Below are positions 38,994 to 52,116 of a DNA stretch of 64,000 nucleotides, piece by piece. The notes under the pieces are model-generated. The model saw only the letters and a list, made by a program, of their open reading frames with translations, was not told the origin of the DNA and ran no database searches. The stretch is from assembly GCA_001643675.2 (NCBI GenBank), contig LSRY02000017.1, positions 1,302,001 through 1,366,000 of the forward strand, written 5' to 3'. The stretch comes from Monocercomonoides exilis PA203 (lineage: Eukaryota; Protista; Preaxostyla). Within the stretch, counting starts at the first letter, position 1. Every line of letters starts with the position of its first letter. Made by a program: the position numbers and the translations under genes.

Positions 38994-39719
<726 letters not shown>

Positions 39720-40265
39720 ACTTTTTGGTCGTTTAAAATCCTTGACCCTTTTGTATCGTTTTGAATTGATGATTTGATTTTTTATTCTTAGCTTTTTATT
39801 TGTGTCTTTTATTTTTGATGCTGTTTTTTTAAATATATTTGTGCAATATGATTTACATTTAAGTAAAAAAATCTAATATTTGTTTTTTGATGCTAAAGAC
39901 TGAAATGGATAAACTTGTAAAAATTGTAGCAAACTTTTAACAAAAAAGGTTAACATATATTAAATATCAAAGGTCGCAAAGAAAACAATTGTATGAAAAA
40001 TGCAATTAACAACAAACAAAATAGATATATATATATGGATAGGTGAAAATATCAATAAAGACAAGTTTACACTAATAATATAATAAGTGCTAATGGTGAA
40101 AATGAAAATTAAATGAGAGAAAAGGTTTGAAAACTTAGAAAAATGAATATTAATGCATACAAAGTTAAAAATAAAAAGAATGTTCGAAGGTAGATAATAC
40201 AGATTAGAACATTTCCAACAAATCGAAAAAGAAATCTTATTTGATTTCACATCAACAATCCTTTA

Positions 40266-43200
40266 TTAACGTGTTGTTTGAATCAAGAATTTGCACCTCT
40301 TCTTTGCATTTTCCAAGGACGTTTCGAAGAGCAATCTTTCTTTCATTGGTGCTTGGTCGCTTTCGAGCCATGCTTCTATTGAGCCAGGCATCTCGAAGTG
40401 GCTCAAGTCAATCGCTCCGTTCAGATAGCTCTGGTCGCCTTTTTGCTGCAAGAACAAGGACAGCTCCACGTCGAGCGATTGAATGTGGTTGATGATCCAT
40501 GTTGAGCTGAAGAGTATCACATCAGTCAGCGGCAGGCGCTGCGTGCTCATTCGGTCGAGGAAGTTGACCAGCTTTCGAAGCAAATGGATGTGTGCCAATA
40601 GATGCTCGTTTCTGAGCTTCGTCGGGTATTTGTACGACTGCATCATCTTCTCCTCGTCGGAGAAGTGGATGAACGTGGCGATGAGTAGCTGGTCGAGCAG
40701 CGTGCGGATCTTCTCCTGCGGCTCGTTGTTGTTGACCAGCACCACCAGCTGGCTCAGCCCGTCCACCAGAACATAATGTGCATCATCTATACGCGCAACA
40801 GACGTGACAAGGTCTTCACTCCACTTCACACTCCCAATCTCCCTCTTTCCTGCCACATCCACAATCGCCTCTGTGCGCCGCATGATTGCCTGGATGTACA
40901 CAGGAATCGGCAGAATAAATACGCCTACTACGGCAGATGCCAGCACAGCTACAGAAATGAACACAACCAGCAGCACTGTCGAGTATCTTGAAGTAAATTC
41001 ACTCGCTTTCTTTTGCAGCTCGTCTCCGATCAGAATCAATGCGTCTTCAGCGTCGTAGAGTGACACGCCTTTGATGAACAGGTAGTTGATGTTGTTCAGA
41101 TCCAGCGCATCTTCTGGCGTCTTCACGAGGTCTGACACAGCCGTCACTGCCCGCACCACCAGTTCTGACAGCCCGTTGAATTCAGTCGAGACGCCTGGCA
41201 TGCGCTCGTTGGAAGAAATGATGTCACACAAACTGCGGTTGATGAGGAGACACGACGTGGGAGCAGTCATCATCTCGTCAATGAGAGTGTTCTCGCCCTG
41301 TGTCCGCGAGAGGGCAATTGAGTCCAGCCGATCGTCAGCTGTCATCGTCTCCGGCGACGGGCCGAGCAAGAAGCGCTTCGAAAGCGACTGGATGAACTGC
41401 ATCTGCGCACTCAGGGTGCTCTTCACATGCTCCACCGACGTGAGGAAGGAGGAGTTGCGGAAAACAGGTGACGACGAGATGGGGTCTTTGAAGAACACAC
41501 TCTCATCTGCCACAGGAAACGTGATCTTTCCAGCAACCATCGTTGCCAGTGCCGAAAGCTGCTTCAATGCAATGCGGCGGTATCCGCTCATGATGATCTT
41601 TCCTGAATGGTCGACTATGCCTGTGATGGCGACGATGGAGACGGCGTAGAACGAGCACGCCAAGCAGATCAGCAGCAGCGACCCGACAGCCAGCTGCCAC
41701 TTCACAGACGGCGGGACCACTCCTCCCAGCACGCGCAGCTTCTCATCCATGTCGTCTATGCGCTGCTGGGCAATGCGCTCTTTCTCCTCTTTCTCTTCTT
41801 CCAACAGCTCGTTGTCTTCCTCCATCCGCCCTTTGTCCAGCACACCCAGATCGTACTTGAACTGCTTTGGAGTTAGCTGCTTCACTTTCTTCCTCTTCTT
41901 CGGCTGATCTGTTGTCTGAGACCTCGATTGTGATTGATACTGTGGCTGAGATTGCGACTGTGACTGACATCGAGACAATATCTGCATCTGTTGTGGCCCA
42001 GGCGAAGGAGAGTAGAAAGAAGGCTGCCGCGAGAAGGACATCAGAGAGGACTGCTGCATCTGCGGTGTCTGGCCTGAAAACGAGTGCTGCGAAGACAGAG
42101 AGGCCAGCTGGTATGCAGCGGCAAAGTTGCTCGGGGTGCCTGTGCCTGCGCGGCTGGGCGTGGCTGAAATAGCAGGTGTGGGCTTAGCTGACAGTGGAGT
42201 GATGATGTTGTCATTGTCATTATCATTCTCATCGATCGTGCTTGCTTCTGGCAGAGGTGTCGCTGTGTTCTTGGCAGCTGCTGCGTCGTCTGCAGCGCGG
42301 TCAGTCTGCGATGTCTCAGTGACAGCAGAGGACATCGTGTCGTGATGACTCTGCGAAGCCCCCTTTGAAGATCCTTCAAGCCGCTCGACCATTTTGGCAG
42401 CATATTCGGCAGAGATTGTGCAGAGCAAGCGCATCGCCTTCTTTCGCTCTCTGATGACGATGCGGATGAAGATCATGACAGGAATGATGGTAGCACACAG
42501 CAGCACAGCGATGCAGAAGACAAGAAGCACAATCAGCAGAATCAGGTTGTCGTTCGAGATCTTCATCACCCTGTCGTATCCTTCTGTCACAATCACCTCC
42601 AGCTCAGAGGAGATCGACAGAGGCGCATTCAGCACGAAGCTGGCTGCTCCTTTCTGGAAGAACGAGAGCAGAGAAAGGTAGTCGGGAAACTTAGCGCTGT
42701 TGTCCACCAAGTCGAGTGCGATGTCCTGCGACCAGTTGATCAGCGTGATAAGATTCAGGTTCTCAGTCACGAACTCCTTCACCAGGTTGACCTGGGCGCT
42801 GTCCATGTAGCACACCACAAACGAGGCAAGATCGCTTTTCCACGCTGAGCTCTCAGCCGTCTTTGTGAACAGCTCAGGCAGCAGCTGCGACTGGCTGATG
42901 ATTGTCTCTTTCGCCTCCTTCCGCTGCTTGTCGAAGTCGTCCCGGCTGGATGCTTGATTAGCTTTATTCATTTGATTCATTTGGCTCATTTGATTCCTTT
43001 GATTTGCTTGATATGCCATATCAATGGCACAATTGTCATTATCATCACTTTCTCTTTCTCTGTCAGCATCTCCATTTTCTGATGATGGAGTAAGAGGAGT
43101 CGGCGTTGGTGGTGGCATTGGGTTAGAGAAAGAGGCGAGTGACTGCACCATCAGATAGAGCACATGGTTCTGATAGATGCTGAGCTGGATGCACTTGCGG

Positions 43201-46200
43201 GAGGTGTCCATGTATGTGGTGGACTCGTTGAAGCGCGAGTTGATCAGGATATACGTCACCATAATCGTCGCTGCCACCAGCCCCACCCCGCTCAGCACAA
43301 TCGGCAGCAGCGCATTCAGCATCGTCTTCGACTTCTCCTTCTCGTCCTTCGTGAGCGAGTCCAGCTTGTTCTTCTTCGATCTTCTTGTATTTCCTCTTTC
43401 TTTCCTCTTCTGCGCTGCTTTCTTCGCTTTCCGCATGTTCCGCTCACGAGTGTACTGGAGCATCCCTTCTGCGTTGAAGTCTGCCTGCGACTGAACATTC
43501 ATCCCTCTTCCATAAAATGATGAGGGGCTCTTGTTCATCAGTGGGCCATCACTTATGTTCAATGAGATGCCATTCGATCTGCTTGTCACTCGACTCAGCG
43601 CTCTTCCTATTTCCATTCCACTCGCTGCTCCTCCACCACCAGCTGCTCCTCCATTCCCATTGACATTTCCTCCACCACCTCCTCCTCCACTCCCCCAAGC
43701 GCTGTCCCCCCATCCGTCTCCTTCCAACGTCGACTGCACATCGTCCTCGTTGCTGCCCATCGACAGCAGCTCGTCCATCTCACTCGGCTCCTCCAGCTCA
43801 TCTGCCTCGTGCAGCAGCTTGTTCGCTGTCTCGTCGTCTGAATATACATCCCTCAGCACCAAAGCCAGTCTTCGCATGACACTCGGGTTGTCTGGTGACT
43901 GAAGCAGCATTTTGGTGTAAGTGTCCTCCGATTCGTGGGCGTATTTGAGGGCTTCCACAATGTGGTGCATCACTTTCGGCACGTCGATTGAGCGCCGCGA
44001 GAGAAGCGACCACACGCGGAACATGTGCGCCTTGCTGATCTCGTCGTTCTTGGCTGCCTGCTGCAGCTGGAGGCGGGTGTTGTATGTGTTCGACATCGAC
44101 GCTGTCCCACCAAACTCAGACACACTCTTCCCTTTTCCAATGGCGCTGTCGGTGCTGGAGAATGTCTCTCTTCTTCTGATGAACGCTTCCATCTCCTTCG
44201 ACTTCACGTATATCAGCCAGCGGTCGATCCAGCTGGGGAACTGGTCGCAGGCGCGCTGCAGCTGCGTGGCGAGGGCGTTTGGGCGGTGGATCATGCTCAT
44301 GAAGGAGGAGAGGAAGAGAGAATACGACACCATCAGATCAGAACTTGTACTGAACTTCTCTTTTTTCAAGGCAGCGACGAATAAGTTGTCGACGAAGCAG
44401 ACGACTTCCTGCTGCTGGCGGAAGGTTGGATCAGAGAGGAAGGAGATCTTTGTCCAAATGGCTGAGGGGGAGCTGATGGTGCGGAGGATGGCTTTGATGA
44501 TGCTGGGCTGGTTGGTGATGAAGGGGGAGACGGAATCAAAAGTGGGACTGCTCTGAGAAGGGATGATGCCGAAGGAGGAGGAAGAGGAAGAGGAGAAGGG
44601 GAATGGCGAGGTGAAAGGAGAGGAAGACATGGAGGGAGCGATTGATGGTGGTGAGGATGATGATGAGGATGAGGCAGAAGAAGAAGTAGAGGATGAAGAC
44701 ATGTAAGAAGAAAGAACAGATGGAGATTGCTGTGAAATGAATGGAGAAGAAGGCGATGCGAAGAGCAAGCCAGGCGGAGGAGAAGGAGAAGCCTGCGGAA
44801 GCGAGGCGGTGCTTGGAGCTGCACGCGACGGAGCGAAGTGTGACTGTGACTGCATCTTCTCATCAGTGCTGAAGAGATGTGTGACCACAGCGCCGTCCAC
44901 CTCAATCCGCAGACCGATCGGCTTTCTTCCTCCACTGCCTGCTTTCTTCCTGTTTTTGTTCTTTTTGCTCTTCTCGATCTCCTGGGCGTGCTGCAGGAGT
45001 GTGGGTGGGTGTGGCTGAAGTGAAGTGTTTTGTGGGGAGGATGCCTGAGGAGACGGCAGAGAAGGGGAGACGTGCTCAGAGAGCGAGTAGATGGGCTTGA
45101 TCAGCGCGAGTCCCTTGTGGCGGGTGTATGCGAAGAGCCCTGCACAGACGCCGAAGACAGCGCAGATGAGCACCCACGACGCATAGAAGAAGACGACACT
45201 CAGAGAAGCCAGTGTCTGATTGCCGCTGGCGACGCTGCGGGCGGCCAGGGAGTTCCAGACGGGCATCAGCAGCGAGGCGATGCCGGATCCGAAGGCAGCG
45301 CCGTAGATGGTGGAGTAGAGGGAGTTGGAGTACGGTGTTGTCTGGGGAAGGGTGATGATCTCGAAGCACATGAGGATGGCAAAGACCACAGAGTGGATGA
45401 TGGCAGTGGCGGTAGGGTAGAACTCGATGAGGATTGTCACAAGAAAGGAGCTGAGGTAGCCCAAAGATTGGGCAAAGCACGTGGTTGCGCCCCATCGCGT
45501 GCTGTTGAGATTTGCCGTGCGCAAGTTTGCATCGAAGATCAAGCAACGATACAATCCAGAAAAGACGAATAGAGCTACAAGGAAAATTGCCGAAAAGACG
45601 AGAAGTGGAATGCGAGCAGTTGGGTTGCAATACGTAAAATTGTTGTTCTCACTAATTGGTGATACGGTCTCCTGAATTAAGCATGCCCAAGGCTTCGAAA
45701 AAATTATGCAGAATGGAACAAGAAAAGGGACAACAATGAGTATTCCAAGCATATCGCTGATAGAATGGAGAGCAGCAGGGGCTCCTCCTTCTCTTTTTGC
45801 AAGTAAGCAAACAATAACACCAAGGGCGATAGTAAGAATCAAAGTCGCTCCCATGAGAACAAAGAAAATTACAAATGATAAAAAAGTTGGTGAATAAAAC
45901 GAAGGGTCGAAGTACAATCTAATGGAGCAAAGATTTAAAATTAAAGAACAAAAAAGGATTATACCCAATTTTACGGTAAACAGCTGTAAAATACAACAAA
46001 GGAACATCAGTTCTTCGAAGTGGTATAAAGATGTATTGAAAAGCAAGCAAAATTGAAATCCCAATAATCACTGAATCAGATATTTGCCGAGCATGCTATA
46101 AATAAAAAATTATTAACGCATAACTCAAAAATTAAACAAAAATATCAAACCAATTTATAGGGATGAAAAAAAGAAAATAACCTGAAAAAAACGCAAGGTT

Positions 46201-46336
46201 CAAATAAAATGTTTGTTAAATAAAAAATTAACGATAGTCCATACAAATGATCGAAAGCATTAAATCGTGCGTAAGGGACAGCATTTCTTTCTGCGACAAT
46301 GGAGCTCGAAACGGATTGTGTGTCTATTGAAGACAT
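40266..46336 (-). CDS. TmcB-like multipass membrane protein with C-terminal hemerythrin domain
   Basis: Likely ATG at 46336 (MSSIDTQS...), with three short 5' introns joining the 1932-aa ORF. N-terminal TM bundle, helical repeat region (LLQSPDNPSVMRRLALVLRDVYSDDETANKLLHEADELEE), four further TMs flanking two large loops, and a hemerythrin domain at ~40445-40832. Confidence 0.85.
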
Positions 46337-47272: not shown

Positions 47273-47745
47273 ATTTTTCTTCTTCTTCTTCTTCTTTATT
47301 TGTTTGCTTGCTTGCTGACAAACGCTTTGAATAAAAATTATAAAAAAATATTATATGATCCGTAATAAAAAATTTTTTATAAGAAAATAATTTTTCCAAA
47401 AAAAAGAGAAAAACTACTGTGATATAACTGGCACAACTCGAAATCAAGCATCATAAAAACATTAAGTTCTTCCTTTTTCTAAAAGGAGAATTAACTTGTT
47501 TGATACATTTCAAAAAACGGATTAAAAATTGCTATGCGATTACTGGACAAGATGGAAAAGAAATTTTTATAATTTTTCACGTTTCGTCAACAACACTTAT
47601 ATGGTTTTGCATAGAAAATAGTGCCGATTGTGCAGAACAAACTATTCTTTCTCAAACCGAGTTTTCTTTCACTGAAAAAAATTTGGAAAAAAGCGAACTA
47701 AAAGAATTTAAACCTTTTATATTTCGTTTGAATCGAAACTTTAAA

Positions 47746-50700
47746 ATGGGGGCCTTACATTTGCTTCAACTATCGTTTCGATGTCATTCCATCATATCCA
47801 ATCAAAACGTATTTTTACTTTTTTCAGAAGAAAACTGTTTGTATCAACTAAGTTTCCAGGAAAATAAGCGGCGAAGCATGTCTGACTTTTCTTGTTCTCA
47901 AAATACCAATTCATTAAACCCATCTAATTATCAATTGAACCAAAAGACTTTAACACATGCTCCAGTCTTGAATGAGCTTCTTTCACAAAATACAACAAGA
48001 TCATTTATTGTGCAATCTGAAATTTCATCAAGGTTTGGAGTGCCCAGAAGAAAGCGGTTTGAAATTGCTTCTCCAACATCAATAATTTTCAGTCAGCACC
48101 AGTCATCAGAAAAGAGAGATCCAGAAATGAAGTATCAACAGTACTTTCCCTGCATTGTCGAAGTTGCTATGAAAACACTTGGACAAACAAATCTAGATGG
48201 AAGAGAACATCAAAGGATTACAGTGGTTTCTTGTTTGGACGAAAGCACATTTCTTATTGGATGGGATGACGGAGCAATTTCTTTGGCACGACTTTACAGC
48301 CACTCACCTTTCTCAGTTGAGATCGGCGGAACATTAGAAATGAGCCAACATAAGCAGACATCTTCGTTCACCCCTCTTCTTGTCTTTTCGACAGTTTTAA
48401 ATTTTGGAGAAGAAATTGTTTCGATACAAGAAGTAACTTTGAATGAGGAAGGCTCAACCAATGCTAAAGGAGAACTGAGTTCCTTGCTGTTGGCTATTAT
48501 TGGAAAGAGAGGAAGACTTGGGTTATTTTCAATTGACATTTCGCAATTGGTGATGAAGACAATTGAGCCAAACAAAAAAGAAACAGCCGATTCATCTTCT
48601 GATGCTCATGCGAAAGAAATCACTTCAAAAATTGATGAAGGAGAAAATGTGCTACAAAATGAACAATATAAAAATATACACATCCAAAATGATTTATATT
48701 TGAATACTGAGAATAAAATATCATCTTCATCATCATTGACATCGACATTTCATTCTGCGTCTGCAGCTCCTTCGCTTTCTCGTGGCCGCTTTAAATCGAA
48801 ACTTGCAGCCACTTCGCTTTTCCGTCCTGCTGTGCCAATGTTAGCTGCAGTCTCGAAGACAACAGCTGACGATTCAAACACAGGAAAACTGGGATCATTT
48901 CAAATGGATTTACAAAAGCAGAAGATTTCAATGCAGAGAGGGGAAGAGAAGAAAACTGAAGTACCATCTACCAGAAGTAACTTTTCGGCAATTACTTCTC
49001 TTTTCGAAAACGAAAAAAACGAAAAAAACGAAGAAAAAGAAGAAAAAGAAGCCGAAGAATATGATAAAAATGAGATTTGTGAAGATGGAAAAATATCAAG
49101 TCAGCGCTTGTATCTGAAGTCTGACAGTTCACAAGCGACGCCAGCAGAAACCTCACTCGCTACGAAGCAGTTCACATTTCTCAAAAAGAATCTTGTTAAT
49201 TCGTTGCCTCAATTCCTTATAAAGCAGCCATCTAATCAGTCCGCTCAATCAGAAGTATCAGAAATCAATAAGCAGCGACCCTATAAATTCATTGTTGAAT
49301 ATTCGCTTCCATTCCAAATCTCACAAATAGCTCTGTGTTCGTTTGCTGGACACGCTCGGCAGCTGAAGGCGTTGCTTTTGTTAACTTCAGACAATTCTCT
49401 TTTTGGTCTGCCTCTTTTCGACTGGGAAGTGGAATTGCGCCAACTTCTTTCAAGGTCTGATGGAAAGCAATCTTTTCACCAGCAATTCTTGCAAAGATAC
49501 AAAGTCCCAGTTGCATTTTTTCGCAGAATGGTTCCAATCTGTTTTGCTTCTGGCAAAAGGGAATGGGATGAATCTGATGATGAATGCAGTACTCCTCATA
49601 CTTCATCAACATTGGAATCTTCTTTATCATCATCTTCTTCTTTTTCGATCAGACCAATTTGTTTATTCCCTTTTTCATATTTTGGAAGTAAGTTATTCTG
49701 CATTGACCAAAAAAGAAACAACTGCTCTGTTTTTTCTATTTCTTCGGGAGTTCCCTTTATCTATCGTTCAGATTCTGGAAGTTTGTTTCCTGTTCCATTT
49801 CTCTTTCAATCGCTCACCGAGTTTCTGGACAGAAGTGCACCATTTGCAATTTCAAATGATTCGACCAATTTTTCGGTCAGAAAGAACATGCAAGACTCTT
49901 CTTCGATGATGTTATCGAAAAGCTTATCATCAGCCAGTTCAATAACAAGTCAATCAACAATTGTGAATTCAATGTTTCATCCTCATCACATCATACGCTC
50001 ACATACACAGCTTTATTTGGACATTCTGTCGCCTCGCTCTCCTCTTTCTAAGAGAATGGCCGCAGCTGAAGTGCAATCACGCAAATTGACAACACAACTT
50101 AACTCATTAAACTATGTGATGACATTCATATGCGCGCATCCTTCATTCACGGTGGAACCAGAGCCAACTCTGCTGAGCTTTAAAAGCAACCCAGTTTTTT
50201 CTAGTTTTTTTGCTGAGAATGCAATGCAATCGTCTGCTCATCCTTCTCCTTTGTCGTCAAGCAATGTCCAATCATTAAGGTCAAGTAATTTTCTTCCACA
50301 AACGTTTCTTTCACATCAGAATCAACAGCTTTCCTTTGAAATCCCATTAGTGCTCAAGCTCACCTGTGCAAAGATGTTCTATTTATTTTACAGCTCAACA
50401 TCGTATTCGAAAGGTTCTTTGCAAGCAACGCTGAAAGATGCGCTGAAGGAGTGGTTCAGCTGGTTCGTGACAGTCTCCATCTGGACAGATGCAATTAGCC
50501 TTCCTCCTCCGCTTTTAACTTCAATTTCTGCTCAACAAAAGAAGCAACATCAATCTTTTCCATTTTCCTCTTTTGAGCTGACAGGCTCCTCTTTGCTTCA
50601 GAAAGCAAATGCTCAAAGTTCATTCAACGAGACACATTCATCTAGGCAATCGACTCTTCTTCAATCAGTTACTCTCGATTTGACATCCATGTCAAATCAG

Positions 50701-52116
50701 ATATTCTTTTGTGATCGAGGCGATACAATGATAATTCCCCTTATTGTTCCTGTTACTGTTCCATTGTCGTTTCAATCACTTTCTCAAATTGCAGTCTCAG
50801 CGTCTCTTCGTTGTGTCTGCCTTTTTCAGCCTCAAATCTCTTCAGAAGCTAAATCAAGAAATGAATATGGATCTGCTTCTTCTTTGGTCATCCCGAAAAA
50901 ATCGAATTATCTCACACATTTTTTCATTCCTTTGAAGAAAGACACGAAATCTTCTTTTTCCATTCACGCTCCTCAATGTTGTCTGGACATAATCGAATTG
51001 GCATCAATGATTCCTCGCACTTCTCCCGAAGAGTTAGCTAACGATCTGGCCGAGCCTCCTCTTCATCCTTCATTTATTGCTGCTATTCAGGCGTCATCTC
51101 CTTCATCTCCTTCGCCATCATCGCAGTTATTATCACCATCAACATCAATATCGCCAACAGCTTCTTCCGCTTCTTCCGCTTCTTCCTCTTCCTCGTGCTC
51201 TTCTTTGCCAACATCGTTATTCTTTTCACCAGCGAAGCAGATTTCAGGGCAATATCAGGATCTGCCATTCTCTGTTGATATGATCACAACAGAATCACGC
51301 ATATCATTTCTCTTCAACAACATTTTAACATTTTTGAATGATAAAAAGAAAAGTTATTCACAGTTGCAAACAGCTTTTTCAGCCAATTCAAACTCTTTTT
51401 TGTCTCCATACCAATCAGAACGCACAGCACAAGCCAGCTCTGCCCCTTCTCCTTCTCCTTCTCCTTCGTCTGATCAGAATTTATTTGCAGCCCTTATGTC
51501 TTGGAAAGCCAGTCCTCTGTGGTCGCATTCTGCAGACACGAAAGCCAGCATGTTGATCAGATTGGCTGTGATATTCTCGTCTTTGTGCAGCAACACATCG
51601 TCCAACGCCTCTCAGTTCATTCAGCCGGCTGGATGGAGTTGGGAAAGATCGATGCTAAATTCTGTAATCCCGGACATTCGCTCAACTTCTGCTCCTGTCC
51701 CGTTTTCAAATCTGGTCGATGCTCCAAAGAATACCTTTTCACTCCCGCATCTTCCACTGCTTCCTTCAAATGCCAGTTCCAGCTCGCATTTGCTGACACA
51801 ACGAGAACCTGAAGTATTTTCGATGAGCTTTCAGATGAGCCATCTGGGCTGCAGCCACCAGTTTAAAATTCAGCTGCGGTTTTGTCCTCGGCAGCCATTG
51901 GACAACACTTCTTTCAGCAGCAAAGACGGAAGAGATATGAAAAAGACGACACTTTCGCATTATTTCGGAGTGGCTACCAAGGAAGGAGAGGCAAATCGTA
52001 AAGTTTTGATAACTCTCTCCTCAAATGCAATTTCTGATCTTTCTCTTTTGGCTGCTGCTGTTGCCTCGCGATTGAAAGGCTCTCAAACAACTACGCCTCT
52101 TCAGACTTCAAAATAG
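47746..52116 (+). CDS. Large hypothetical protein, possibly FAAP100-like
   Basis: Long ORF with first in-frame ATG at 47746. Beta-rich N-terminal half, short coiled coil, alpha/beta C-terminus. Motif resemblance to FAAP100 is tentative (see findings). Confidence 0.75.
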   Translation: MGALHLLQLSFRCHSIISNQNVFLLFSEENCLYQLSFQENKRRSMSDFSCSQNTNSLNPSNYQLNQKTLTHAPVLNELLSQNTTRSFIVQSEISSRFGVPRRKRFEIASPTSIIFSQHQSSEKRDPEMKYQQYFPCIVEVAMKTLGQTNLDGREHQRITVVSCLDESTFLIGWDDGAISLARLYSHSPFSVEIGGTLEMSQHKQTSSFTPLLVFSTVLNFGEEIVSIQEVTLNEEGSTNAKGELSSLLLAIIGKRGRLGLFSIDISQLVMKTIEPNKKETADSSSDAHAKEITSKIDEGENVLQNEQYKNIHIQNDLYLNTENKISSSSSLTSTFHSASAAPSLSRGRFKSKLAATSLFRPAVPMLAAVSKTTADDSNTGKLGSFQMDLQKQKISMQRGEEKKTEVPSTRSNFSAITSLFENEKNEKNEEKEEKEAEEYDKNEICEDGKISSQRLYLKSDSSQATPAETSLATKQFTFLKKNLVNSLPQFLIKQPSNQSAQSEVSEINKQRPYKFIVEYSLPFQISQIALCSFAGHARQLKALLLLTSDNSLFGLPLFDWEVELRQLLSRSDGKQSFHQQFLQRYKVPVAFFRRMVPICFASGKREWDESDDECSTPHTSSTLESSLSSSSSFSIRPICLFPFSYFGSKLFCIDQKRNNCSVFSISSGVPFIYRSDSGSLFPVPFLFQSLTEFLDRSAPFAISNDSTNFSVRKNMQDSSSMMLSKSLSSASSITSQSTIVNSMFHPHHIIRSHTQLYLDILSPRSPLSKRMAAAEVQSRKLTTQLNSLNYVMTFICAHPSFTVEPEPTLLSFKSNPVFSSFFAENAMQSSAHPSPLSSSNVQSLRSSNFLPQTFLSHQNQQLSFEIPLVLKLTCAKMFYLFYSSTSYSKGSLQATLKDALKEWFSWFVTVSIWTDAISLPPPLLTSISAQQKKQHQSFPFSSFELTGSSLLQKANAQSSFNETHSSRQSTLLQSVTLDLTSMSNQIFFCDRGDTMIIPLIVPVTVPLSFQSLSQIAVSASLRCVCLFQPQISSEAKSRNEYGSASSLVIPKKSNYLTHFFIPLKKDTKSSFSIHAPQCCLDIIELASMIPRTSPEELANDLAEPPLHPSFIAAIQASSPSSPSPSSQLLSPSTSISPTASSASSASSSSSCSSLPTSLFFSPAKQISGQYQDLPFSVDMITTESRISFLFNNILTFLNDKKKSYSQLQTAFSANSNSFLSPYQSERTAQASSAPSPSPSPSSDQNLFAALMSWKASPLWSHSADTKASMLIRLAVIFSSLCSNTSSNASQFIQPAGWSWERSMLNSVIPDIRSTSAPVPFSNLVDAPKNTFSLPHLPLLPSNASSSSHLLTQREPEVFSMSFQMSHLGCSHQFKIQLRFCPRQPLDNTSFSSKDGRDMKKTTLSHYFGVATKEGEANRKVLITLSSNAISDLSLLAAAVASRLKGSQTTTPLQTSK

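Follow-up and report, generated by a model that had tools for sequence, protein, structure and literature searches.

A TmcB-type multipass membrane protein with a C-terminal bacteriohemerythrin-type domain belongs to a large gene family in Monocercomonoides exilis

A single spliced gene of Monocercomonoides exilis PA203 fuses a TmcB-type multipass membrane protein to a complete bacteriohemerythrin-type domain. It occupies positions 40266-46336 on the minus strand of the window, i.e., of the 64,000-nucleotide stretch (contig LSRY02000017.1, positions 1,302,001 to 1,366,000) to which all coordinates refer, and encodes about 1968 aa. M. exilis is a mitochondrion-less, anaerobic protist, and the gene, a member of a large family, is a testable candidate for oxygen/redox sensing in such an organism. 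Our preferred reading, which we hold with a probability of roughly one half, is that of a receptor-like membrane protein combining a ligand signal from outside with the internal O2/redox state. What was originally seen in the sequence alone is confirmed; the interpretation put on it is partly supported.

Gene structure and transcript

The minus-strand open frame at 40266-46064 comprises 1932 codons; short exons at the 5' end complete the gene as follows.

46245..46336, minus strand: exon 1, ATG at 46336, 30 codons plus 2 nt, product MSSIDTQSVSSSIVAERNAVPYARFNAFDH
46182..46244, minus strand: intron 1, 63 nt, GT..AG, deduced from a contig that exits the genome at 46181 and re-enters at 46245
46151..46181, minus strand: exon 2, 31 nt, finishes the Leu codon and continues with LFSFFHPYKL (RNA contig pieces)
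46096..46150, minus strand: intron 2, 55 nt, GT..AG, joint 46095/46151 in contigs of all four RNA runs
45965..46095, minus strand: exon 3, 131 nt, product HARQISDSVIIGISILLAFQYIFIPLRRTDVPLLYFTAVYRKI (RNA contig pieces)
45919..45964, minus strand: intron 3, 46 nt, GT..AG, joint 45918/45965 in contigs of all four RNA runs
40266..45918, minus strand: exon 4, 5.65 kb of uninterrupted coding sequence, stop codon 40266-40268

Removal of intron 3 brings exon 3 into frame with the long exon 4, and translation exon by exon joins the frames from the ATG at 46336, in exact agreement with the upper bound originally proposed for the gene. The boundary of exon 1 is marked by the loose end of an RNA contig mapping to 46245-46274. 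Its product, MSSIDTQSVSSSIVAERNAVPYARFNAFDH, is the beginning of a conserved N-terminal motif, ARFxAFDxLLF...(Y/H)P, common to this gene and its full-length relatives, e.g., P0056, while HARQISDSVIIGISILLAFQYIFIPLRRTDVPLLYFTAVYRKI of exon 3 includes the first transmembrane (TM) helix. Placed contigs cover exon 4 at 42441-45918 and are absent over 40200-42400. For the hemerythrin region, continuity of the transcript is therefore deduced from the frame, which runs from the last TM helix into the hemerythrin domain without meeting a stop codon, from the 98% of the gene's sampled words that are present in RNA-seq contigs (four runs, one study), and from the paralogues. A polyubiquitin gene adjoins the locus, almost certainly by coincidence.

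Domain architecture and iron site

From the N- to the C-terminus, the conserved motif, predicted to be cytoplasmic, is followed by these parts (residues in open-frame numbering):

45120..46095, minus strand: N-terminal polytopic membrane domain, about 8 helices, spanning intron 3 (hydropathy and family alignment)
43782..44078, minus strand: TPR_TmcB domain, residues 663-761, predicted cytoplasmic (Pfam PF25474)
42420..43352, minus strand: module 1, TM helix 918-940, helical ectodomain of about 234 aa, TM helix 1175-1197 (hydropathy)
40905..41714, minus strand: module 2, TM helix 1458-1481, helical-bundle ectodomain of about 215 aa, TM helix 1697-1719
40830..40904, minus strand: helical linker, about 25 residues, joining the hemerythrin domain to the final TM helix (model helix 269-289, loop 290-306)
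40455..40829, minus strand: hemerythrin domain, residues 1746-1870, motif H-HxxxE-HxxxH-HxxxxD intact
40269..40454, minus strand: C-terminal tail, 62 aa, (...MPGSIEAWLESDQAPMKERLLFE...), no family match found

Altogether, about 12 membrane passes lead to a tail that is predicted to be cytoplasmic and consists of a complete hemerythrin domain. The topology is a prediction, and a self-consistent one: loops bearing Cys pairs and sequons fall outside, whereas the TPR domain, the hemerythrin domain and the Lys/Arg-rich low-complexity linkers fall inside. The suggested likeness to TmcB is borne out by a PF25474 match (E 2.5e-13; 50.5 bits vs a cut-off of 27), and in the ESM Atlas the complete protein falls into TmcB/TmcC clusters from Preaxostyla and Parabasalia. 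For the N-terminal 8-helix domain, which carries a conserved, Cys-containing outer loop, a convincing match was found neither among solved structures nor in the Atlas; the AlphaFold model of the homologous segment P0056:1-355 has a pLDDT of 84.5 and a pTM of 0.82.

The C-terminal domain is a real domain of the bacteriohemerythrin type. It scores 72.3 bits with NCBIfam TIGR02481 (cut-off 51.75) and 76.7 bits with NF033749 (E 1.7e-21), while the general Pfam Hemerythrin model stays under its cut-off (19.6-22.9 vs 25.3 bits). Its closest solved relative by sequence is DcrH-Hr (2avk, E 6e-9), onto which the AlphaFold model (pLDDT 90) superimposes with Z 15.8 and an rmsd of 1.9 A over 132 residues at 26% identity. 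The domain resembles the sensor type (DcrH) more than the invertebrate carrier type; the bacteriohemerythrin models reach 72-77 bits, the invertebrate one 37 bits. All seven iron ligands that had been read from the sequence are present with the expected spacing:

40776-40778, minus strand: codon of ligand H1763
40665-40667, minus strand: codon of ligand H1800
40653-40655, minus strand: codon of ligand E1804
40602-40604, minus strand: codon of ligand H1821
40590-40592, minus strand: codon of ligand H1825
40485-40487, minus strand: codon of ligand H1860
40470-40472, minus strand: codon of ligand D1865

In our preferred reading, the domain would bind iron and react with O2. The C-terminal tail is conserved in the clade that retains the first His ligand, and it is modelled next to the hemerythrin bundle at a pLDDT above 90.

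Both of the anticipated TM-loop-TM modules are present, and both are modelled with a helical-bundle ectodomain reminiscent of bacterial chemoreceptor sensors. They are homologous to each other (profile-profile probability 93%, E 2.7e-7 over 233 columns); the loop of module 1 carries NxS/T sequons and Cys residues, and the ectodomain of module 2 a conserved Cys pair, C1605 and C1613. The AlphaFold model of module 2 (pLDDT 90) was compared (VIA) with bacterial four-helix-bundle sensor domains and matched those of PilJ (Z 13.1), Vc1313 (12.4), Adeh_2942 (11.3), PcaY (11.2), McpN (11.1), NarQ (10.7) and Tsr (9.5), values of about 13 or less being in the range that the tool calls possibly generic for helical proteins. 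By sequence, the ectodomain matches none of the Pfam sensor families 4HB_MCP, PilJ and TarH. Modules 1 and 2 are predicted to pair with each other: three runs gave ipSAE values of 0.79, 0.80 and 0.79 (best control 0.00), with a contact agreement of at least 92% and a partner pLDDT of at least 80. Of 78 solved complexes, 51 attain the mark for pairing, as do 2 of 108 mismatched pairs; this calibration on separate proteins is applied here to two membrane hairpins of one chain.

As originally noted, Pfam detects no cyclase, kinase, PAS or other signalling domain in the protein. The accompanying idea that hemerythrin takes the place of a cyclase or PAS module in such scaffolds found no support in this genome, whose 4-5 Guanylate_cyc matches all lie in frames other than those of TmcB genes. 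A kinase follows the hemerythrin domain only in Paratrimastix P0069; there the link depends on a predicted 508-nt intron, an in-frame Met stands just ahead of the kinase, and the annotation may have merged two genes.

Paralogues, taxonomic spread and selection

The gene is no one-off. The M. exilis genome yields 57 hemerythrin matches, and 55 of them are preceded, 1.5-9 kb upstream and on the same strand, by a match to TPR_TmcB, so that the TmcB-hemerythrin family comprises at least 55 genes; no free-standing hemerythrin was found in this genome. The order TM-ectodomain-TM-hemerythrin, including module 2, is retained in all 28 paralogue C-termini examined. A search for the same architecture, which had been proposed as a check, extends the family to Blattamonas, Streblomastix and Paratrimastix, and all 30 named family matches with the C-terminal module belong to the Preaxostyla.

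Across about 110 family modules with an identity of about 20%, the E, HxxxH, H and D of the motif hardly vary at all, and the same applies to the Fe1 histidines and the two bridging carboxylates. Of the two histidines at Fe2, the O2 site, one or both are lost in most paralogues, and hence O2 binding cannot be the common function of the family. A full seven-ligand site occurs in a minority (14 rows of about 110), which includes our gene as one of about six intact members in M. exilis and persists in Monocercomonoides, Blattamonas and Paratrimastix. The hemerythrin domain of our gene is under strong purifying selection: dN/dS is 0.06-0.125 against the closest paralogues and 0.06-0.08 for the tail against L003 and L004. 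Two of the three comparisons reach or approach saturation at synonymous sites.

As to the proposal of an undescribed class, we found no paper describing a TmcB-hemerythrin fusion. The proposal has to be qualified in that some relatives carry automatic database names such as "putative hemerythrin" and "Hemerythrin-like domain-containing protein", and in that Karnkowska et al. 2019 (PMC6759080) list hemerythrin as an M. exilis oxygen-stress gene of bacterial origin, the architecture not being described.

Proposed oxygen/redox sensing, its alternatives and known systems

Sensing and signalling by this protein could proceed as follows. Modules 1 and 2 would pack against each other within the molecule, forming a pseudo-dimer whose four membrane helices bundle as in a bacterial chemoreceptor homodimer. 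O2 or another oxidant would oxidise the cytoplasmic di-iron site, and the N-terminal loop of the hemerythrin domain (VKWSEDL, starting at residue 1746) might change between ordered and disordered states with the redox state. Such a change is described for DcrH-Hr in a review of bacterial hemerythrin sensors (PMC9388753). Since the loop physically links the hemerythrin domain to the membrane helix, its change could be passed to the membrane bundle; and because an enzyme domain is absent, the outgoing signal would run via protein contacts of the TPR_TmcB domain, the C-terminal tail and the 8-helix domain.

That the fusion itself is an artefact, the hemerythrin being encoded by a small gene of its own or the long frame yielding no real protein, is hardly credible: the lack of RNA contigs over 40200-42400 is outweighed by the open frame across the junction, by the retention of this junction in 28 paralogues and three other genera, by a dN/dS far below 1 across it and by the 98% of sampled words in the RNA runs. 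Accepting the fusion, one may ask whether the domain senses anything. It might serve as a metal-stabilised four-helix bundle for docking or oligomerisation, iron or another metal being structural and the ectodomains and TmcB part doing the work. The lack of an output domain, the confidently modelled tail beside the bundle, and the majority of paralogues that keep the other five ligands without the O2-site histidines, as fits a single-metal or structural site, suit this role. Yet the two Fe2 histidines would be superfluous for it, the seven-ligand clade persists in at least three genera and is subject to strong purifying selection, and the nearest solved relative is a sensor domain that responds to redox state; we regard a purely structural role as fairly unlikely.

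We think it quite unlikely that the protein is a membrane-tethered scavenger of O2, H2O2 or NO, or that it shields Fe-S enzymes. In favour of such a role, M. exilis lives as an anaerobe or microaerophile, hemerythrin domains of bacteria undergo rapid autoxidation (PMC9388753), and Karnkowska et al. 2019 (PMC6759080) count hemerythrin among expanded oxygen-stress genes, citing work on Campylobacter, for whose hemerythrins a protective or scavenger role was proposed that the genome paper assumes for M. exilis as well. A stoichiometric role, however, needs no receptor-like scaffold of 1968 aa and 12 helices with two ectodomains, catalytic turnover would call for a reductase partner that is not evident, the O2-site histidines are missing from most copies, and the genome yielded no free-standing hemerythrin. 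Animal FBXL5 offers a different eukaryotic precedent, its hemerythrin-like domain controlling protein stability. An analogous iron/oxygen-dependent switch, in which the domain folds only when iron-loaded and receptor abundance follows iron/oxygen status, would suit a terminal domain predicted to be exposed to the cytoplasm, and the adjacent polyubiquitin gene could be added were it not almost certainly coincidental. We consider this very unlikely; a degron or link to an E3 ligase was not seen, and the domain matches the bacteriohemerythrin type and not that of FBXL5. A 2016 survey reported no significant similarity of O2-binding hemerythrins to the structures of human FBXL5.

Returning to the sensor reading, the best match in both sequence and structure is DcrH, a methyl-accepting chemotaxis protein of Desulfovibrio vulgaris (2avk, 2awc, 2awy). 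In both proteins a membrane receptor whose sensor domain is flanked by TM helices carries a C-terminal hemerythrin with all seven ligands, cytoplasmic in DcrH and predicted to be so in M. exilis, and in both the domain opens with the same seven residues, VKWSEDL. In contrast to DcrH, the M. exilis protein is eukaryotic, has no HAMP or MCP signalling domain between membrane and hemerythrin, which begins only about 25 residues past the last TM helix, and carries two sensor modules per chain plus the 8-helix membrane domain and TPR_TmcB. Soluble bacteriohemerythrin-type regulators of a c-di-GMP enzyme (PMC9388753) likewise use the di-iron domain as a redox/O2 switch on another module, but that module is an enzyme domain, which the M. 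exilis protein lacks.

With Dictyostelium TmcB/TmcC (PF25474), the protein shares a TPR_TmcB domain above the Pfam cut-off and the large multipass build. Its ectodomains recall the periplasmic four-helix-bundle sensors of bacterial chemoreceptors and histidine kinases (PilJ 8wdf, Vc1313 8bsa, PcaY 6s18, McpN 6gcv, NarQ 5iji, Tsr 2d4u), with a TM helix, an up-down bundle outside the membrane and a second TM helix (Z 9.5-13.1, within the possibly generic range), but they are larger (215-234 aa) and contain a Cys pair. The predicted pairing of the modules resembles a chemoreceptor dimer, though within one chain. Among eukaryotes, FBXL5 of animals and BTS/HRZ of plants are soluble E3-ligase subunits with divergent hemerythrin-like iron/oxygen sensors. 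They share with the M. exilis protein a hemerythrin-like di-iron domain, which there serves sensing and not oxygen transport; the M. exilis protein differs from them in being an integral membrane protein with the canonical bacteriohemerythrin motif.

Gene structure and membrane scaffold

The TmcB-hemerythrin gene of the window (hereafter the window gene) is a real and well-delimited gene on the minus strand. Residues are numbered by its long open frame.

40266-46064, minus strand: open frame of 1932 codons
45919-45964, minus strand: intron, from a spliced RNA contig joint with GT..AG ends
46096-46150, minus strand: intron, from a spliced RNA contig joint with GT..AG ends
46182-46244, minus strand: third intron, with the RNA contig end resuming at 46245-46274

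Four RNA-seq runs of one study contain 98% of the sampled words of the gene. RNA-seq contigs were mapped to 40200-46199; none was placed over 40200-42400, a kind of gap in contig coverage that proves nothing. Exon-by-exon translation sets the start at the ATG at 46336, from where the frames run cleanly into the long exon and yield a protein of approximately 1968 aa. The small 5' exons code for ARFNAFDHLLFSFFHP, and full-length relatives from Blattamonas and Paratrimastix begin with the same N-terminal motif. Since the exon frames join from this ATG across the spliced joints, and the motif opens the full-length relatives, the bounds 40266-46336 of the original prediction are correct. In GenBank, the models of the two closest paralogues, P0002 and P0003 (MONOS_10743 and MONOS_3906, contig 25), start at the equivalent of open-frame Met71 and lack the conserved N-terminal motif and the first membrane helix; in the window gene, three short 5' exons code for both. 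These two models are probably truncated, the small 5' exons having been missed.

The window as a whole reveals a sharp composition mosaic, with a G+C content of approximately 50% in coding and 23-30% in intergenic regions, which gives rise to long spurious open frames antisense to genes. A polyubiquitin gene whose three ubiquitin repeats are arranged head to tail (39006-39719, plus strand) lies on the other strand, approximately 550 bp past the 3' end of the window gene; an open frame of 1538 aa with many low-complexity Ser runs occupies 47500-52116 (plus strand).

Outside the hemerythrin domain, the only Pfam domain detected in the window protein is TPR_TmcB (PF25474; residues 663-761, 50.5 bits against a gathering score of 27, E 2.5e-13), and an ESM Atlas feature search places the protein among TmcB/TmcC clusters. 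Hydropathy and structure models agree on about 12 membrane helices, eight of them N-terminal and the others in two later pairs, each of which flanks a loop of 215-234 aa. Both the TmcB likeness and the two TM-loop-TM modules proposed from the sequence were thus recovered. The predicted membrane topology is coherent: Cys pairs and N-glycosylation sequons are in the outer loops, and the cytoplasmic side has the low-complexity linkers rich in Lys/Arg together with the TPR and hemerythrin domains.

The N-terminal domain was modelled on P0056, a full-length homologue, with exon 4 of the window gene as one row of the alignment (pLDDT 84.5, pTM 0.82). Searches with this 8-helix fold gave unconvincing best matches in the PDB by Foldseek (E 0.45) and by VIA (Z 8.3 at an rmsd of 9.4 Å); in the ESM Atlas all full-length matches had a TM-score below 0.4, and values of 0.65 and 0.72 were reached only by fragments of 67-74 aa. 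Such an absence of a convincing match does not prove a new fold.

The two later helix pairs form modules, each composed of a membrane helix, a helical ectodomain and a second membrane helix, and module 2 precedes the hemerythrin domain. In the model, the loop of module 2 folds into a helical bundle that runs on into both its membrane helices. Its best structural matches other than hemerythrins are periplasmic four-helix-bundle sensors of bacterial chemoreceptors and histidine kinases, namely PilJ (Z 13.1), Vc1313 (12.4), Adeh_2942 (11.3), PcaY (11.2), McpN (11.1), NarQ (10.7) and Tsr (9.5), where values below about 13 may be generic for helical bundles. The 4HB_MCP, PilJ and TarH profiles matched none of 28 paralogue modules at E up to 10. 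Because the Z scores are possibly generic and no Pfam sequence match accompanies them, we regard module 2 as possibly alike in fold and topology rather than as a member of these sensor families. An Atlas feature search with the C-terminal module returned sub-threshold leads of 0.85-0.86, one of them a PilJ-type cluster.

Module 1 is homologous to module 2 when profile is compared with profile (hhalign probability 93%, E 2.7e-7, 233 columns); a single module 1 sequence found nothing against the module 2 profile. Complex prediction for the two modules gave an ipSAE of 0.79-0.80 in three runs, the best control scoring 0.00; the mark is reached by 51 of 78 solved complexes as against 2 of 108 mismatched pairs. 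At least 92% of contacts were common to the runs, partner pLDDT was at least 80, and the predicted interface follows the membrane helices together with the first helices of the ectodomains. These models support a putative pairing of modules 1 and 2.

The hemerythrin domain and its family in Preaxostyla

By motif, profile and fold, the C-terminus of the window gene is a hemerythrin domain of the O2-binding, bacteriohemerythrin type, for which iron and O2 binding are predicted. The signature H-HxxxE-HxxxH-HxxxxD, as defined in PMC9388753, comprises five His, one Glu and one Asp, and is complete here (H1763, H1800/E1804, H1821/H1825, H1860/D1865; codons checked, alignment to DcrH-Hr, the hemerythrin domain of the Desulfovibrio chemoreceptor DcrH). 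The last 190 residues score 72.3 bits against TIGR02481, above its cut-off of 51.75, and 76.7 bits (E 1.7e-21) against NF033749, under that model's stricter cut-off of 84. The broad Pfam model PF01814 gives 19.6-22.9 bits, just under its cut-off of 25.3, and the invertebrate hemerythrin model only 37 bits. DcrH-Hr is the closest solved relative (E 6e-9). The domain as modelled by AlphaFold from 28 paralogues (pLDDT 90) superimposes on DcrH-Hr structure 2avk over 132 residues (Z 15.8, rmsd 1.9 Å), and Foldseek gives a TM-score by target of 0.86 with 2awc. The hemerythrin of the original prediction is upheld, complete with all seven ligands of a putative di-iron site. Against the two closest paralogues, dN/dS in the domain is 0.06-0.125, with synonymous sites at or near saturation in two of three comparisons.

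The search for the same architecture covered the M. exilis PA203 assembly (82.3 Mb, 101 contigs); the full-length analysis draws on the window gene, on eight loci of 10 kb each and on database proteins. TPR_TmcB has 69 matches in the genome and the hemerythrin model 57. For 55 of the 57 hemerythrin matches, a TPR_TmcB match lies 1.5-9 kb upstream on the same strand. The other two are truncated or stop-containing copies of one contig 47 gene, which belongs to a trio.

Near-identical hemerythrin-coding copies, contig 47:
L006 119103-119474
L005 471049-471420
L008 219026-219397

In this trio one frame is intact (2650 codons), another is truncated to 522 codons and the third is interrupted by a TAG, a pattern that looks like recent segmental duplication and subsequent decay. 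As 55 of the 57 matches are joined to TPR_TmcB and both exceptions are decayed copies, the genome has no free-standing hemerythrin. Among the 14 TmcB loci without a hemerythrin match, a degenerate hemerythrin domain is still visible in two. At one TmcB-family locus (L034, 51-6896, contig 19) the frame stops about 25 residues past the last membrane helix and the hemerythrin model finds no match; either this member naturally lacks the tail or its frame resumes beyond an intron.

A profile of the C-terminal module retrieved 188 cluster representatives at E <1e-30, and all 30 named eukaryotic matches come from Preaxostyla (M. exilis, Blattamonas nauphoetae, Streblomastix strix and Paratrimastix pyriformis). 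Some of these relatives are automatically named 'putative hemerythrin' or 'Hemerythrin-like domain-containing protein'. Protein word-index searches, in which low-complexity words dominate, found nothing beyond the query and two close paralogues, and with the hemerythrin domain alone gave no match; both are uninformative on relatives outside Preaxostyla. A hemerythrin-only tree with the best non-family matches (140 columns) is poorly resolved, and its grouping includes short Preaxostyla fragments. One metagenomic protein from an ENA contig, P0127 (1926 aa), was retrieved solely via its hemerythrin domain; its domains are of bacterial type and comprise a SpoIIE phosphatase, a solute-binding domain, multiple PAS and GAF domains and, at the C-terminus, the hemerythrin.

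Iron-site states across the family

In a census of about 110 aligned modules, the Glu, the HxxxH pair, the sixth-position His and the Asp are nearly invariant, and the first two histidines are variable. Only 14 rows show all seven ligands (HHEHHHD); in the commonest states Arg stands in place of the first His and Val, Gln or Thr in place of the second. By the classical assignment, we take the first two histidines to hold Fe2, the O2-binding iron, so that their loss leaves a half-site. The five histidine ligands are split 3 + 2 between the irons, and O2 binds at Fe2 (PMC9388753).

One half of the module tree (51 rows) has lost the second-position His in 50 rows, the remaining row having Arg at the first position, and only four of the 51 rows retain the first-position His. 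Full sites are found in two places on the tree, the Paratrimastix group and a clade of 24 oxymonad rows to which the window gene belongs; the states require at least three changes. For these reasons the full site is probably ancestral and was kept in a minority of the family.

Proposed signal output and relation to known systems

Anaerobic protists are not known to possess the HIF pathway, and M. exilis lacks mitochondria as well. Karnkowska et al. 2019 (PMC6759080) list hemerythrin among the bacterial-origin oxygen-stress genes of M. exilis and do not give its architecture. So far it has been taken as a simple bacteria-derived detoxification gene, whereas here it is found only as a domain of large proteins: by predicted topology, every hemerythrin domain of the genome terminates a receptor-like membrane protein on its cytoplasmic side. 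When hemerythrin architectures were surveyed in 2016, the O2-binding type turned up in just 4 of 135 eukaryotic genomes, with no metamonad among the four. Our literature searches returned no paper linking TmcB and hemerythrin, and none on hemerythrin in Blattamonas, Paratrimastix or other Preaxostyla beyond Karnkowska et al. 2019.

In the best-supported reading, we infer a receptor in which the di-iron domain, on the cytoplasmic side, would pass the state of O2 or redox on to the membrane bundle. The N-terminal loop of the hemerythrin would relay this state; in DcrH-Hr the corresponding loop is ordered or disordered depending on redox state (PMC9388753). Output would proceed via protein contacts; domain searches revealed no enzyme domain in the window protein or in six very long relatives. 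There are rival explanations: the window protein may be a tethered scavenger, or the hemerythrin may serve as a structural metal domain or as a stability switch like that of FBXL5.

One Paratrimastix pyriformis protein, P0069 (KAJ4460679; L039 3001-10256, JAPMOS010000011.1), is annotated as TM-ectodomain-TM-hemerythrin-protein kinase. Its hemerythrin-kinase junction is a predicted intron of 508 nt, longer than any other in the model, and roughly 20 residues ahead of the kinase domain there is an in-frame Met; the annotation may represent two genes. As proof of a signalling output this fusion was demoted to a lead, since the junction hangs on the predicted intron.

Returning to the receptor reading, we give roughly a three in ten chance to its fullest form. 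The family would be a chemoreceptor-like superfamily of Preaxostyla's own, with 12 helices and two four-helix-bundle ectodomains forming a single-chain pseudo-dimer wired straight to a DcrH-type hemerythrin. The full-site clade, including the window gene, would then contain the first known eukaryotic membrane O2/redox receptors, steering aerotaxis or oxygen avoidance in mitochondrion-less flagellates, and the far larger half-site clades would put the remaining iron site to another signal. If the sensing role is true, eukaryotes would have an equivalent of the bacterial design that couples a chemoreceptor to hemerythrin. The value of the finding lies more at the level of the family than of the single gene: it has grown to at least 55 genes, is common to free-living and gut-dwelling relatives, and is divided into full-site and half-site forms. 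It thereby supplies well-defined candidate sensors, together with naturally occurring variants of the ligand set for comparison.

Among known systems, DcrH-like methyl-accepting chemotaxis proteins carry HAMP and MCP signalling domains, whereas Pfam searches at E up to 1 detected neither in the whole window protein. Class III adenylyl and guanylyl cyclases carry Guanylate_cyc (PF00211), which by Pfam is absent from the window protein, as the first reading of the sequence had it; the 4-5 Guanylate_cyc matches of the genome fall in frames other than TmcB genes. Against TM-flanked four-helix bundles such as those of the 4HB_MCP, PilJ and TarH sensors, the model of module 2 scores Z 9.5-13.1, a level that may be generic for helical bundles, and their profiles gave no sequence match. 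The window gene is a sensor-type hemerythrin joined to a candidate receptor, a variant on a known theme.
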